Assembly: GCF_000150275.1 (NCBI RefSeq)
Contig: NW_002060945.1
Span: 8,510,011 to 8,574,010, forward strand
Source: Trichoplax adhaerens
Lineage: Eukaryota > Animalia > Placozoa
DNA length: 64,000 bases
Reading direction: 5' to 3'
Below, piece by piece: positions 44,298 through 49,884 of the stretch. The number at the start of each line of letters is the position of its first letter. The stretch's first letter is position 1. The notes beneath the pieces were generated by a model, which had not been told where the DNA came from, ran no database searches, and saw nothing but the letters and a program-made list of their open reading frames with translations. The position numbers and the translations under genes are program-made.

Positions 44298-45679
44298 TGT
44301 CTGAAAATAAAAAATGAGATTATTTTTAGTTTTTTAAGAAGATACTCGACTACTGTACTTACTGTATGCCAAAATATATTGTTGCAACCTTTTTATTACC
44401 ATAAATTAATAGTAACCTACTAGCTATGGCCATGAAAGTAGCTAATCGCATATGATGCGTAAAATTCAAGTTTAATACTGTACTACTAATTTTCAGTTAT
44501 GAAGTCAGTGCAACAGATTAGCGTGCTATTTGCAACCTACTTTGTGATTATAAGTAGCTATCCTGATTCTATAAATGCATCTGCTGTCCTAAAACTTGGT
44601 AAGAACTGCAAATGCGTTGTTTTAGCACTGCGTTTCTCGGAAGAGTGATTCAGATGCTCTAAATTGTTACTATACGTGTATCATTTTTAATATAGATGAT
44701 CTAAAATGGAGTGTTAGCCTTGTACTCTGTACAGTACATCATGCAATTATGATAACAGAAATTTGGGGAGTCATACTTCGATCTTTTTCTTTGTATATTA
44801 GCACATACGCGTATGCGTACATATACATATGTACAGATATCTTAGACTATCAAATATTGTTGAATTGTAATTTTGTATATGATTTTATTTATAAATATAA
44901 TTTCGCCCTGTATCATCCATATCTAGAGGTTAGATGCAAGATAGGCAAAAACTTGCCAATAAATTTATTTCATTATATAAGCGTCTTGGCATTTATTGTC
45001 TTGCTTAAAATCTGCAGTATCCTATATTTCTGTATAGTCAATAGGACTCAATGGTGCATCTACTGACACCATAATTCATGATGGTACATAATGTAGTAAA
45101 TATACTGTATGTACTAGTATATAAAAAAATGCAATGATGTATGGAGTGATAATGTGAAGTAAACGAGAACAGTGATAGTGGTATGTAAGAACGAGGGATC
45201 GACTAGCCCATTGAAATATGAAAACAGTACGATATACAGTACAGTAGTACAGAAACCCTAATGAACAGGCAAGGAGTACTAGAAGAAGACTTGAAACTAA
45301 TCGCTCTAGGATGGACAGACATTTTCGGCCTCATCTCGTCAAAACACGCGTACCGTGTATTGTTTCAAACACTTCGTTATGACAGTACTTTAGTATGCAG
45401 ATGGGCGATTTTGAATTGACTAATTTTTCTAAATTAAGTGATATTACACTAAATGTTATTATCTGTTGCTAAGTTCCGCTTGGAGGCAGTCATATAAAAT
45501 CGCCGATGTTATTAAAATTACTACCAGTGATTTAGAAAACAAACATGGGAAGATCCATACTAAGTAGGTATTTTTCGGTATTTATAGCCTCATTTGGTAA
45601 CAAACTTCCGTCTGTCTGAGAGAGAGAGAGTGCGGTCTTCTTCTACTGTACAGTACTGTACTGTACCGTACGTACACAT

Positions 45680-45792
45680 GTACGTACTGTAGGCCTACCA
45701 AGCTAGGCTGGAGTGGACCAGTACCGTACTGTAGCAGGTTAAAGGTCATATCATGGAGGGTTTTTCTTTTACCTCTATGGGGTCATACTGTA
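45680..45792 (+). repeat. Left copy of the 113-bp direct repeat flanking the foreign island
   Basis: GTACGTACTGTAGGCCTACCAAGCTAGG...CTCTATGGGGTCATACTGTA is identical by eye to 49330-49442. Confidence 0.95.
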
Positions 45793-45796
45793 TAGT

Positions 45797-46075
45797 TTGC
45801 AGGTGCCGCCCCTTAAAACCGCTAAACGAGATATTTGTGGCTTTGGAAATAGTTTGGTTTCAGCTGATGGCGTATTCTGTCGGAATCTATGTTTGACACG
45901 CTTAGTTAAAGGCCCTCTCTGTTATGGAGAGACCTTAATTCAAAATAATCTTGAAGAGGCAATTGAACTCAATAAAAATGAGGCGATGGTTGAAGGAAAT
46001 CCCTGTCCAAAGCGCATTATTGATGTGGCTGAGGCTTATTTTGAAGCAATCACTTCATTTTATGAAGACAACTAA
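45797..46075 (+). pseudogene. 3' fragment of an unknown bacterial-style gene, truncated at the island junction
   Basis: The open frame begins exactly at the junction with no ATG near its 5' end. Its TAA stop abuts the stop of the convergent ORF. Confidence 0.55.
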
Positions 46076-46771
46076 TTAAAGAGTTTTAAAGTACGGAAGG
46101 AGTTTTGAGCGAACAACTAGTTGAATCAAGAAAACGGCTATCAGGAGAAAAAAGACGATGGCAACATATTCAACTTTTGCGTAAGCAGATTTCTTAGTCA
46201 CTGAGTAATCACTTCCAAAGGAGGGCATAACTTGAACATCCCAATACTTGGGCCATTTAGAGATTGCTTGAATATTTTTAAAAACTTCTTGAAACTTTGC
46301 GGCTTTACCCATTTCTTCTTCGAAAGCTCTTATATTTTCAGTATCTGTTTCCGTTTTGTCTTCGCGTTCTGGCGAGAGGCCTGTTGTAACATACTCAACT
46401 GAAACGCTGTCAAACATAGTTGGAATTTGTGTGAGTCCTCCTCTTTTCATGCTTTCTAAACGCTCCCCGCACCAGGTCAAAGAGTCATTTAGGCTAGTCA
46501 GACTTTGTGTAATGCTTCCAGAAGCAAGAGGTTGCTGACTTGTTAAACATTCAAGAAGTTGAGTAAACTTGATATTGCTTGCTTGAAGAGCGCTGAGCAT
46601 ATTAGGAAAACAACGAGAGTTTATATAAGTCCCTATAGGTTGGAGAGATGGGGTTTTGTCTAAGTAAGTCTGTTGATCTAGACTTAATGTTGCTAAATAA
46701 CTCATTTCCCTAATTCCATATGCATTTGTCACAAAACAGCTTTGCAACAAGATAACGTAATCTACGATCAA
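46076..46771 (-). CDS. Hypothetical intronless protein with a C-terminal TM helix; probably 5'-truncated
   Basis: 231-codon ORF. The frame is open back to the palindrome at ~46795. YVAIVFFLLIAVFLIQLVV is followed by RSK. No family recognised. Confidence 0.6.
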   Translation of the reverse strand: MIVDYVILLQSCFVTNAYGIREMSYLATLSLDQQTYLDKTPSLQPIGTYINSRCFPNMLSALQASNIKFTQLLECLTSQQPLASGSITQSLTSLNDSLTWCGERLESMKRGGLTQIPTMFDSVSVEYVTTGLSPEREDKTETDTENIRAFEEEMGKAAKFQEVFKNIQAISKWPKYWDVQVMPSFGSDYSVTKKSAYAKVEYVAIVFFLLIAVFLIQLVVRSKLLPYFKTL

Positions 46772-47364
46772 TAAGTCAATTCCTTGAACTACGTATCAAG
46801 GAACGATATCTGCACTATCACGAGCACTTTTGCTCTACTAGCAGACTACACAAAGACTTAAACGCCTCGTATTTTACGTTAAACACTAAGTTGGACAATT
46901 CTTCTTTATTTCACGATATACTGCATTTATATACTATTCCTCAATAGTTCATGAGTCATAGTTAATACAATTAACATTAGAATCATTTACTGAATTAGAT
47001 ATTAATTTTAGCTACTGCTCTCTTAATGCAGACAACAGTATTTACGAACATAGACATGTAATAACTAATACAGAATAGTCAGATTACGATATGTCCTATC
47101 ACGGAACATTTCCATGATAATTTACAGTCTATCATAAGTAAATTACAATCACAATGATTCGAACTGTAAGCAGATGATTTGCATTCCCTATTATAACTAT
47201 TATAATTTCAGTATGTGTATAAGTGTCACTGTCATAAAAAGTCAGTGCTATATTAAAATACAGTATATCCAAATTAGAAGTTAACTAAATAAGGATAGTC
47301 TAACAGAATTATCCTAACATAGTTATTTCTACTGTAATACAGTATTTAACACTGTAACAGCATT

Positions 47365-47396
47365 AAAAAAAAATTTCCTGCATGATAACAGGAAAT
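47365..47396 (-). terminator. Rho-independent terminator-like hairpin
   Basis: The minus strand reads TAA-TAC-ATTTCCTG-TTATCATG-CAGGAAAT-TTTTTTTT immediately after the 317-aa ORF stop. Confidence 0.65.
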
Positions 47397-47399
47397 GTA

Positions 47400-48353
47400 T
47401 TATCCCCCAACGGGAATATGCACTTCATCTTGAGTCTCTAGGGGATCTTTGCCAAATCGTTTAACAACGGTTGACTGAATTTCTCCTCCCACTCCAGGGC
47501 GTTTTACGACAAAGACGGGTTCGATTCCTAAAAGCATTTCTCGTTGGTTTGCTAGAGCAGATCTTTTCGTTTCGAGTTCATGTGTTAGGCGGCCAGAACG
47601 TTGCAGGTGACTTTCAAGAACACCAACGGTCTCCTGAAGCCAGACAATATCCTGATCAGCAAATGGGGCGATACGTAGCATTTGAAAATTTGCTTCATAT
47701 TCGGCAAAACGTTCGAAAAGCCATTCAGCCTGTTTCCGTGTTGGAGCTGTTAAGTCTCCTAAATGATGGCTTAAGTCTCGTTCGAAGCCACACCGCTCTA
47801 TGATGATTATTGAACTTGGGTCTCGGATAATCCGGTTCGCTTTTTGAATGAGAAGAGCTTTTCCTCCTTCAAGCCACCCTGTGGTTTCAGTTGGGTCAAA
47901 TTCAGGAAGAAAGTGCCAATAGCGTTTAAAAAGCTGCAAAGTGTCTAGCAGATTTTTTTGCAGGTAAAAGTTCTTTTCTTGTGGAGATAACTCTTTTTGC
48001 TTGCGGATTTGAACAGTGGACTGTGCACAAGAGGCCGGGCAGTTCATACGTCCAAGTTCGACTTGAAGGCGCTTAACTTCAGCGGGGTTTCCTTGGGCTG
48101 CTTCAATTTCACCTAATTTTGCTTGATAAGCATGGAGATCGCCCAGAGTTTCGACAACTTGTTTTTGTTTCCGTTGTAATGAGGCGAGGTATTCCTCAGC
48201 ATTTTTTACAACCTGGGTAAGAAGCGCTGTTTGGGTTGTGTCACCGCGAAAAGCTTTTATGAGAGCGGTGCTATGGGGCTTGAACTTGAATAGTTGGCCT
48301 AAGAGTTTTTTCTCGCTCATTTTATCATCAAAGAATTGTTTAACAAAGCCCAT
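47400..48353 (-). CDS. Hypothetical intronless 317-aa alpha-helical/coiled-coil protein, bacterial-style
   Basis: Complete ATG-to-TAA ORF, 17 bp downstream of the preceding ORF, with purine-rich AAGAAGAGG just before the ATG. No family recognised. Confidence 0.75.
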   Translation of the reverse strand: MGFVKQFFDDKMSEKKLLGQLFKFKPHSTALIKAFRGDTTQTALLTQVVKNAEEYLASLQRKQKQVVETLGDLHAYQAKLGEIEAAQGNPAEVKRLQVELGRMNCPASCAQSTVQIRKQKELSPQEKNFYLQKNLLDTLQLFKRYWHFLPEFDPTETTGWLEGGKALLIQKANRIIRDPSSIIIIERCGFERDLSHHLGDLTAPTRKQAEWLFERFAEYEANFQMLRIAPFADQDIVWLQETVGVLESHLQRSGRLTHELETKRSALANQREMLLGIEPVFVVKRPGVGGEIQSTVVKRFGKDPLETQDEVHIPVGG

Positions 48354-48370
48354 AGCCTCTTCTTGACTTC

Positions 48371-49066
48371 TTATCGCTTTTTAAGGTTATTAGATTCTAT
48401 ATTTGTAGCTTTTAAGGCAGAACCCAATGCTTGGCTATTAGATTCATGCAACCAAACAGTAAGCTCTTCTTGTCCAGCATGAGCAAAACTCAGACCTTGC
48501 AAATCAGGATTGTGAGCGATGACTTTCCATGTATTTGGAACGAGCTTTAGGTTAAATAATGGGAATCGTTCTTCAGAGCTGTAGCCACACAAAAGGCAAA
48601 CGAGTTCTCTGCCAGAAGGATGGCGGTTACAGCAGTTATTTGGCTGAAGCCAGAGGCCTTGAAATGCAATCGTAGGAGGCATGCCTTCTTTTCGGTGCAT
48701 GTGCTGAGTTAAGAGTGCATAAAGTTGTGAAGAAATCTGCTCATAACGGGCATCCATAATAACAGGATCGACGCGTGCTCCAACAGGATCACAACCAGAT
48801 AAGAAGGATCTCATGATGCTTTGTTCAATCTTTGACTGATAAAAAATTAAGGAAAACCCTTGCTGGGTGGCGACATAAAAATAGTAAATCAAAGGGCCAT
48901 TAGGATCACGAGGCACGAGAGACGTTAAGACATTGACAGAGCTTCCATGTGGATTTTTCCAGTAGGGGTTTTCTGGAGGAAGACGATGTTGGTGTTGCAG
49001 ATGAGCAGATGAACAAACGTCAGAAGATGGGAGTTGTCCATGATGCATACTGGGGGATAGAGGCAT
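48371..49066 (-). CDS. Hypothetical intronless 231-aa protein with a Ser/Pro/His-rich N-terminus, bacterial-style
   Basis: Complete ATG-to-TAA ORF, first gene of an operon-like pair. No family recognised. Confidence 0.7.
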   Translation of the reverse strand: MPLSPSMHHGQLPSSDVCSSAHLQHQHRLPPENPYWKNPHGSSVNVLTSLVPRDPNGPLIYYFYVATQQGFSLIFYQSKIEQSIMRSFLSGCDPVGARVDPVIMDARYEQISSQLYALLTQHMHRKEGMPPTIAFQGLWLQPNNCCNRHPSGRELVCLLCGYSSEERFPLFNLKLVPNTWKVIAHNPDLQGLSFAHAGQEELTVWLHESNSQALGSALKATNIESNNLKKR

Positions 49067-49214
49067 GACTATTTGATGGATGTAAATTTAAAGGTGAAAA
49101 GGGACCAACGGGGGGGGGGGGGTAGCCATCTTTATGCTCCTACTCTAGAAATTAAAAGAAGAAGTATTGGGATATCTGTTGATAAGATGCAAGCATAAAA
49201 AAAGCCCTCAGAGC

Positions 49215-49325
49215 ATGCTCTTTTGCTTTTGGGCAGGCTTCCAGCATCTTATTTAAGATATGGATACGTCCCTGCTTAGCTTGAGCCAGAGCTGCACTCA
49301 TGATCTTTGGGTTAATTCCTTCAAG
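49215..49325 (-). pseudogene. pnp: Internal fragment of bacterial polynucleotide phosphorylase (end of RNase PH domain 2)
   Basis: Translates as LEGINPKIMSAALAQAKQGRIHILNKMLEACPKAKEH, matching the PNPase segment that follows the MDIK motif (E. coli-type [27 protein letters not shown]). Not in the ORF track. Confidence 0.85.
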
Positions 49326-49329
49326 TACA

Positions 49330-49442
49330 GTACGTACTGTAGGCCTACCAAGCTAGGCTGGAGTGGACCAGTACCGTACTGTAGCAGGTTAAAGGTCATA
49401 TCATGGAGGGTTTTTCTTTTACCTCTATGGGGTCATACTGTA
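49330..49442 (+). repeat. Right copy of the 113-bp direct repeat, ~440 bp upstream of the ABCD3 ATG
   Basis: Identical by eye to 45680-45792. Confidence 0.95.
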
Positions 49443-49884
49443 CAGTATAGTATTGTTTACCATCAGCGTCTTTTAACCGGGTAAAAACGTTGAAGTTTTA
49501 GGTCGCACTTTGTACATTGTCCTCCTGTCCACTCTACTGTTGGGACGTCTATAGAAAGGTGTAGAGAAAAAACTTTACCCCGTCAAAAATCTAGTGCAAT
49601 GTGGCCCATAGCTCGTAGAGTAACAAGTACTGTAGCCCACGGTGTATGGGGAGTTCGGATTGTAGGTTTTTCTTTTATCTCTATGGCTATTTGTACAGTA
49701 CAAAGTTGGATTTTGTGGAGGTTCATCGCTTCACGCGGTGTCACTCGGATTGCGAATGGCGTGACATACAGAATAATACAATTGTAATCGTCAGTGGTAT
49801 TGCACAAGTAGTAGTTACCCGGCGACATAGCTACTGCTTGGTTTGCATTATAAATCAGATCAAGACAGAGTGCATGGAAATCTG

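Follow-up and report, generated by a model that had tools for sequence, protein, structure and literature searches.

Fragments of Wolbachia chromosomes in arthropod and nematode genomes are nuclear inserts of endosymbiont DNA. In placozoans, which are among the simplest animals, the symbioses described so far are rickettsial and margulisbacterial. A chlamydial contribution to Trichoplax adhaerens is not new as an idea: genes of chlamydial type, namely rsmE (a transfer candidate), cox3 and fkpA-trmH, were reported from this animal more than a decade ago (Driscoll et al., 2013; PMC3641634), in a study that found chlamydial 16S absent from the original genome-project traces and that mentions neither pnp nor the gene model TRIADDRAFT_54984. 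A preprint of 2026 has since recorded, by 16S, two Simkaniaceae clades in single wild placozoans, clades that were “not described as placozoan symbionts yet” (10.1101/2025.02.27.640636); gene transfer is not mentioned there. In the literature on Trichoplax together with Simkania, and on horizontal gene transfer between placozoans and chlamydiae, we found no account of the island described below.

The window, a stretch of 64,000 nucleotides of T. adhaerens DNA, belongs to scaffold C1412, which is more than 8.5 Mb long in an assembly of 105.6 Mb and 1414 contigs. Within it lies an island of 3533 nt (45797–49329; about 2.9 kb without a later host transposon), whose GC content, with the host repeat taken out, is 41.9%, as against 40.9–43.4% in Simkania and 33–35% in the host flanks. 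A 37-codon piece of the gene for a bacterial PNPase (pnp) stands at its right-hand end, and we consider it very probable that this piece is a dead remnant of pnp at the end of one stretch of Simkaniaceae chromosome integrated in the nuclear genome of T. adhaerens. The island shares these features with the Wolbachia inserts: a random fragment of the chromosome of an intracellular bacterium, with its end genes cut, integrated in the host, decaying and invaded by a repeat. The differences are that here the apparent donor is a chlamydia and the host a placozoan, that no living donor has been detected in the sequenced culture, and that the island is bracketed by what looks like a target duplication of 117 nt. 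The island is a known kind of event, a bacterial DNA insert, with a new pair of donor and host; its features are collected in Table 1.

Table 1. Features of the island and of its borders, in positions of the window, with the blocks collinear with the Simkania pnp region (aa, amino-acid identity; nt, nucleotide identity).
Feature	Position	Strand	Observation	Collinear block and Simkania counterpart
Host direct repeat, left copy, 117 nt	45680..45796	+	found by repeat search	
N-acetylmuramoyl-L-alanine amidase, last 92 codons and stop	45797..46075	+	cut by the left host junction	45797-46072, convergent amidase, last 92 codons; 70-71% aa, 72-73% nt
209-aa ORF with C-terminal membrane helix	46076..46705	-	homologue of the 226-aa S. 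negevensis protein adjoining the amidase gene	46094-46627, 226/241-aa gene; about 30% aa
Host transposable element, about 633 nt	46722..47359		inserted in bacterial DNA; GC 30%	
Large gene, second half with conserved C-terminal tail	47400..48353	-	tail matches syntenic Simkania remnants	47388-47528, large-gene remnant (C-terminal tail) in both Simkania genomes; about 58-61% aa, 72-74% nt
Large gene, first half	48371..49066	-	residues 90-225 match ORFs of 525-930 aa in Chlamydiota	48938-49054, large-gene remnant; 38% aa over 39 residues
Hairpin remnant (3' arm and T-run), intergenic	49173..49216	-	blastn and alignment to Simkania	49173-49221, intergenic hairpin; 82% nt
pnp gene fragment	49215..49325	-	37 codons, end of second RNase PH domain; without start codon, KH and S1	49216-49325, pnp; 81% aa, 79-81% nt
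Junction letters between bacterial DNA and right host repeat copy	49326..49329		pnp homology stops at 49325, repeat begins at 49330	
Host direct repeat, right copy, 117 nt	49330..49446	+	99% identical to the left copy	

An earlier note, written from the letters of this stretch, had read the 37-codon minus-strand frame as the end of the second RNase PH domain of a bacterial PNPase, distinct from the animal enzyme PNPT1. The translation is exactly as quoted there and free of stops, and both parts of the reading hold. A six-frame search of the whole assembly with TIGR03591, the NCBIfam model of PNPase, returned a match at 8559225–8559335 on C1412, which are the coordinates of the fragment, spanning profile positions 508–544 of 689 (E = 3.5e-5). 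Searched against all PDB chains with phmmer, the fragment matches PNPase chains in 21 of 23 cases, the best being Caulobacter PNPase 4am3 (residues 519–548 of 717; E = 1.2e-4, 25 bits), and against the genome of Simkania negevensis the per-genome E-value is 3.8e-16. A Pfam scan gave no match, as 37 residues are too few for the RNase PH model. The match to PNPase is genuine rather than a product of chance, and the piece is confirmed as a true fragment of a bacterial PNPase. Animal PNPT1 belongs to the same enzyme superfamily, but its human chain is absent from the PDB matches at E-values up to 10, and the PNPT1 of the host is an intron-bearing gene on another scaffold, C1409, as found with TIGR03591. 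That search recovered no full-length bacterial pnp in the assembly in any of the six frames, and no further Simkania-type pnp elsewhere. Its top match in the assembly is an S1-domain match on the small contig C1377 (40594–40827; profile positions 614–688, E = 8.3e-12), which sits within an open frame of 1179 codons and is not a PNPase.

As a working PNPase the fragment fails membership: the complete architecture of two RNase PH domains, KH and S1 is absent, and the score is 27.7 bits over 37 residues where the curated cut-off of TIGR03591 stands at 525 bits. The earlier note had the frame cut at the right host junction, and alignment bears this out; homology to Simkania pnp begins at 49325, with the four junction letters beyond it, and the host repeat lies directly upstream of the fragment, which has neither a start codon of its own nor the rpsO–pnp context (rpsO stands upstream of pnp in all four Simkaniaceae loci examined, and is absent in the island). 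A second cut, on the C-terminal side, had been overlooked. PNPase homology also ends at 49216/49217, and this is an internal deletion breakpoint, beyond which the island continues with the 3' arm and T-run of a hairpin; in Simkania sp. the hairpin lies 1.3 kb, and in S. negevensis 1.9 kb, downstream of this point in pnp. By blastn the remnant of this hairpin (49173–49221) is 82% identical over 49 nt to the S. negevensis locus (L118:6431-6479) and 89% identical over 28 nt to that of Simkania sp. (L117:6452-6478). The intact hairpin of Simkania sp. has a folding energy of -15.6 kcal/mol (z = -2.4); in the island only its 3' arm survives and the remnant no longer folds well, and a scan of the island for terminators found no site. 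The KH and S1 domains are missing because of the deletion at 49216/49217, and since these domains are deleted and the start codon is absent, the piece cannot encode the enzyme. What is left is a relic without function, bounded by the host junction on one side and by the deletion on the other, and the value of such a scrap of PNPase is that of a donor marker.

The question of the donor was addressed by scoring the fragment genome by genome, with the same 38-residue query and the same scoring throughout. Simkaniaceae (39 genomes) stand highest, with a best score of 58.8 bits at 81% identity in Simkania negevensis Z and a median of about 51 bits, followed by a set of 61 chlamydial relatives centred on a Parachlamydiaceae genome (best 53.2 bits, median about 42 bits); in 80 named chlamydial loci the identity of the fragment reaches 78%. 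Scores in 251 Rickettsiales genomes, a set reached via a Rickettsia felis plasmid locus, are mostly 20–30 bits and at best 36.3 bits at 61% (R. felis alone, 23 bits at 45%), and in 251 Pseudomonadota genomes the best is 35.9 bits at 60%. Single named PNPases of Bacteroidota, Bacillota, Fusobacteriota, Actinomycetota and Proteobacteria (from Parabacteroides, Listeria, E. coli, Legionella, Methylobacterium, Fusobacterium, Nonomuraea and Tsukamurella) are identical at 13–20 of the 37 residues; for Bacteroidota, Actinomycetota and Fusobacteriota the comparison is through these single sequences only. With the 58-residue open frame as query, phmmer found 14 hits at E-values up to 1e-3 among 1.84 billion cluster representatives, and of these the PNPase-like ones were led by short metagenomic pieces and a single full-length PNPase was present (P0012), with relatives in species genomes that are titled Chlamydiae or Parachlamydiaceae almost throughout. 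The representatives are clustered at 50%, which hides close relatives, hence the genome-by-genome searches.

The earlier note had taken the peptide to be most like chlamydial PNPases, had preferred a chlamydial to a rickettsial or margulisbacterial donor on that account, and had named best hits in Rickettsiales or another phylum as the outcome that would speak against it. The best hits lie in Chlamydiota instead, and graded similarity, the relatives of the other island genes and the gene order all favour the chlamydial donor and narrow it to Simkaniaceae. In a phylogeny of PNPase, which the note had also called for, a tree from the 37 columns places the fragment beside the five Simkaniaceae rows, with an SH-aLRT of 62 for the Simkaniaceae side. 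The fragment differs from the codons of Simkania pnp by 13–14 synonymous and 8 non-synonymous changes; mostly synonymous differences fit divergence of bacterial lineages under selection, not decay after transfer, and they point, as does the nucleotide identity of 72–81% to the sampled Simkania genomes, to an unsampled Simkaniaceae lineage as the true donor. Since 37 residues of a conserved motif carry a weak phylogenetic signal, the assignment to a family depends mainly on the neighbouring genes.

The largest of these neighbours is annotated in the public gene model TRIADDRAFT_54984 (P0001; 539 aa), which bridges the two large-gene ORFs via a predicted intron; every match of the model falls inside one ORF or the other, and nothing depends on the predicted splice. 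Relatives were found in 11 of 301 Chlamydiota genomes (best E = 7.7e-10), and the family is enriched in Simkaniaceae, with 9 holders among 39 genomes as against 4 among about 260 other Chlamydiota. The chlamydial relatives are single ORFs of 525–930 aa that share an N-terminal block and a short C-terminal tail, and the two “orphan” ORFs of the island are therefore halves of one gene. It has no Pfam domain, and the 317-aa island ORF, when searched by word index, matched nothing except the Trichoplax gene model. The genomes with the best large-gene relatives, G345 and G356, are also top-scoring for PNPase (81% and 78%, respectively); both are Simkaniaceae MAGs that form one 90% cluster with Candidatus Neptunochlamydia. 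For the 209-aa ORF, a search within Chlamydiota only found relatives in two Simkania genomes (E = 6.9e-19 and 3e-15), and the pairwise match to the 226-aa protein of S. negevensis (E = 1e-21) is nearly full length and includes the C-terminal membrane helix.

We compared 12 kb around the Simkania matches with the island by tblastx and blastn. The island is collinear, over six blocks of the same order and orientation (Table 1), with what follows from pnp onwards in S. negevensis Z and Simkania sp.; the order in Simkania is pnp, terminator hairpin, large-gene remnants, the 226-aa membrane protein and the convergent amidase. On the S. negevensis Z chromosome of 2,496,337 nt the corresponding proteins are PNPase CCB88626.1, S15 CCB88627.1 and amidase CCB88622.1; the Simkania amidase genes are of 386 and 394 aa, and PF01520 is found on the full-length Simkania protein. 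From inside pnp to the amidase, the conserved blocks are 59–81% identical in amino acids and 72–82% in nucleotides, and the GC content is similar. The island differs from the Simkania region in lacking the first ~518 and the last ~150 codons of pnp and the one to two genes behind, and in having animal DNA around it and an animal transposon inside it. It also holds a nearly full-length large gene, where both Simkania genomes have only short remnants; the N-terminal part of the island gene matches a remnant at the syntenic S. negevensis site. At that site, short N- and/or C-terminal large-gene remnants are all that is kept (L118:6051-6392 in S. negevensis Z, L117:6575-6701 in Simkania sp.), and the Trichoplax insert therefore holds a more complete large gene than the sampled bacteria. 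A patchwork of unrelated fragments was considered and rejected, the island being collinear with Simkania save for one deletion and one transposon.

The neighbours of pnp differ in G345 and G356, so that the arrangement of genes favours the Simkania side within Simkaniaceae. A tblastn search of the island ORFs against the 6-kb flanks of 80 chlamydial pnp loci, mostly of Parachlamydiaceae, found nothing. The sequence comparisons support a Simkaniaceae bacterium as the donor, with synteny as the decisive evidence. A sister chlamydial lineage outside the family, unsampled and sharing this gene order, is an improbable source, although the DNA identity to the sampled Simkania is only 72–81%, one non-Simkaniaceae chlamydial genome (G047) likewise reaches 81% over the 37 residues, and four holders of the large-gene family lie beyond Simkaniaceae; against these stand the collinear arrangement and the same-site large-gene remnants, both seen in the two Simkania genomes only, the highest median PNPase score in Simkaniaceae, and the enrichment of the large-gene family there. 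Less credible by far, and in our view close to excluded, is a donor from the symbionts already described, Rickettsiales such as Grellia or the Margulisbacteria Ruthmannia. These are known intracellular partners of placozoans, and it has been proposed that T. adhaerens received rickettsial genes (PMC3641634), but the synteny is with Simkania; the rickettsial PNPase scores are low throughout the 251 genomes; and the large gene, for which Rickettsiales were the one contrast group outside Chlamydiota, matches in those 251 genomes only at noise level (best E = 2.9e-4, several matches with stops). Margulisbacteria were covered through the 1.84 billion representatives only, where no PNPase of theirs outranked the chlamydial ones.

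The Simkaniaceae DNA resides in the nuclear genome of the host. The island is single-copy in the assembly, the 117-nt repeat has two copies in the whole assembly, both of them bracketing the island, and the island stretch is present in twenty public runs from six studies. In two independent runs, X1 (2025) and X2 (2021), the depth of the island is 35–52x and equals that of the flanks, and several island variants, including 48325–48382, have half the depth, which is what two host haplotypes would give. At the left junction one contig joins 34 nt of the left repeat to island sequence. At the right junction, none of the contigs listed spans 49216–49330; contigs end at 49216 and begin at 49330, and the depth is not reduced. 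These breaks, and a flanking 117-nt duplicate that could mislead an assembler, are what can be said for reads of a living chlamydia having been misjoined to a host scaffold by assembly or contamination. We regard such an artefact as very improbable, given the equal depth in runs of 2021 and 2025, the half-depth variants, the contig across the left junction, the host transposon inside the island, and the end genes truncated on both sides, one of them deleted internally; nor does the pnp profile find any other piece of such a bacterium in the assembly.

The assembly contains at least 657 candidate copies of the transposable element, many of them 98–100% identical, and its read depth is in the thousands; copies so nearly identical show recent activity. 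In two other T. adhaerens runs there are contigs in which 46721 is followed directly by 47360, with 5 letters shared at the joint and the element missing, and this copy is therefore polymorphic or specific to the reference. Among runs of “organism B”, X9 yielded a contig of 1591 nt (47508–49096) that is 99.4% identical to the island, at half the depth of the flanks, whereas X14 covers the flanks and has zero depth on the unique parts of the island; the disagreement could reflect hemizygosity, a difference between strains, or filtering.

We propose that a single stretch of Simkaniaceae chromosome, reaching from inside pnp to inside the convergent amidase gene, entered the nuclear genome; because it would have begun and ended inside genes, pnp and the amidase gene are truncated by the host junctions. 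Capture probably made use of a double-strand break with staggered ends, from which the 117-nt duplication would result. An internal deletion took away the rest of pnp together with the next 1.3–1.9 kb, so that pnp codon ~556 now abuts the 3' arm of the hairpin; it is likely to have arisen at the time of transfer or afterwards, and not in the donor. The host transposable element inserted into the island later. The source of the DNA may have been a bacterium living inside placozoan cells.

On this last point another route has to be weighed, in which the Simkaniaceae DNA came from bacteria in prey or in co-cultured protists (amoebae, algae) eaten by the animal, and not from a symbiont of placozoan cells; the insert would then not document a symbiosis of placozoans and chlamydiae. 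Known Simkaniaceae inhabit amoebae and many other eukaryotes, and the assembly holds no other Simkania-type pnp. The genome-project traces, in addition, lack chlamydial 16S and do contain contamination from algal food (PMC3641634). The two Simkaniaceae clades found in single placozoan individuals (2026 preprint; 10.1101/2025.02.27.640636) speak against food as the source, as does the greater ease with which an intracellular resident would be integrated into a heritable lineage, and neither point is decisive. We judge the food route unlikely; from the insert alone, a bacterium taken up with food and one that once lived as a symbiont of the animal cannot be told apart.

The additional bacterial association of placozoans that the earlier note had drawn from the locus is plausible. 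More tentatively, and at somewhat less than even odds, the island may be a datable fossil of a Simkania-like infection, with chlamydiae as long-standing intracellular partners of placozoans that had access to heritable cells. If so, the infecting bacterium plausibly belonged to one of the two clades of Simkaniaceae that the 16S data show in wild placozoans, and the island preserves a nearly full-length chlamydial gene that has decayed to remnants in cultured Simkania genomes. The insert itself is physical evidence, independent of amplicon surveys and stemming from a laboratory strain with no detected chlamydia, that chlamydiae reached the heritable cells of the Trichoplax lineage. Its two junctions, the internal deletion and the transposon provide a marker with which the contact could be dated across placozoan haplotypes and the living donor sought.

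The rsmE gene of the host offers the nearest comparison within the same genome project, being likewise of chlamydial signal and situated, intronless, on a large scaffold (C1413:1052248-1052952; locus L125:1486-2226; 246 aa). It was considered as a pointer to the same donor family and does not resolve the matter: it is 33–44% identical to many chlamydial copies, and Simkaniaceae are not the best of these. Without a preference for Simkaniaceae, rsmE probably reflects an older or separate event; it is an intact gene, whereas the island is younger, with a DNA identity of about 72–82%, syntenic, resolvable to family and decaying.

The decay is most apparent in the large gene. Comparison of the reference with other runs gave 26 within-species variants in its frames, of which 23 change the amino acid; there is no sign among them of purifying selection on the gene in the animal, domestication is rejected on this ground, and the gene is decaying in the host. 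The reference breaks the large-gene frame near 48353–48377, where other runs show a length difference of one base. These observations call for a correction of the annotation, in that TRIADDRAFT_54984 is a decaying chlamydial gene and not an orphan gene of the animal. In the spacer that separates the large gene from the pnp remnant there is a run of 13 G (49113–49125), which is 8 letters shorter in two other runs. Differences between the reference and the runs number about 28 in 1.7 kb of the island (47400–49100), as against 3 in 0.65 kb of the left flank (44700–45350), and many of them are C-to-G changes or clustered pairs; such a density may represent real relaxed evolution or errors in the reference.
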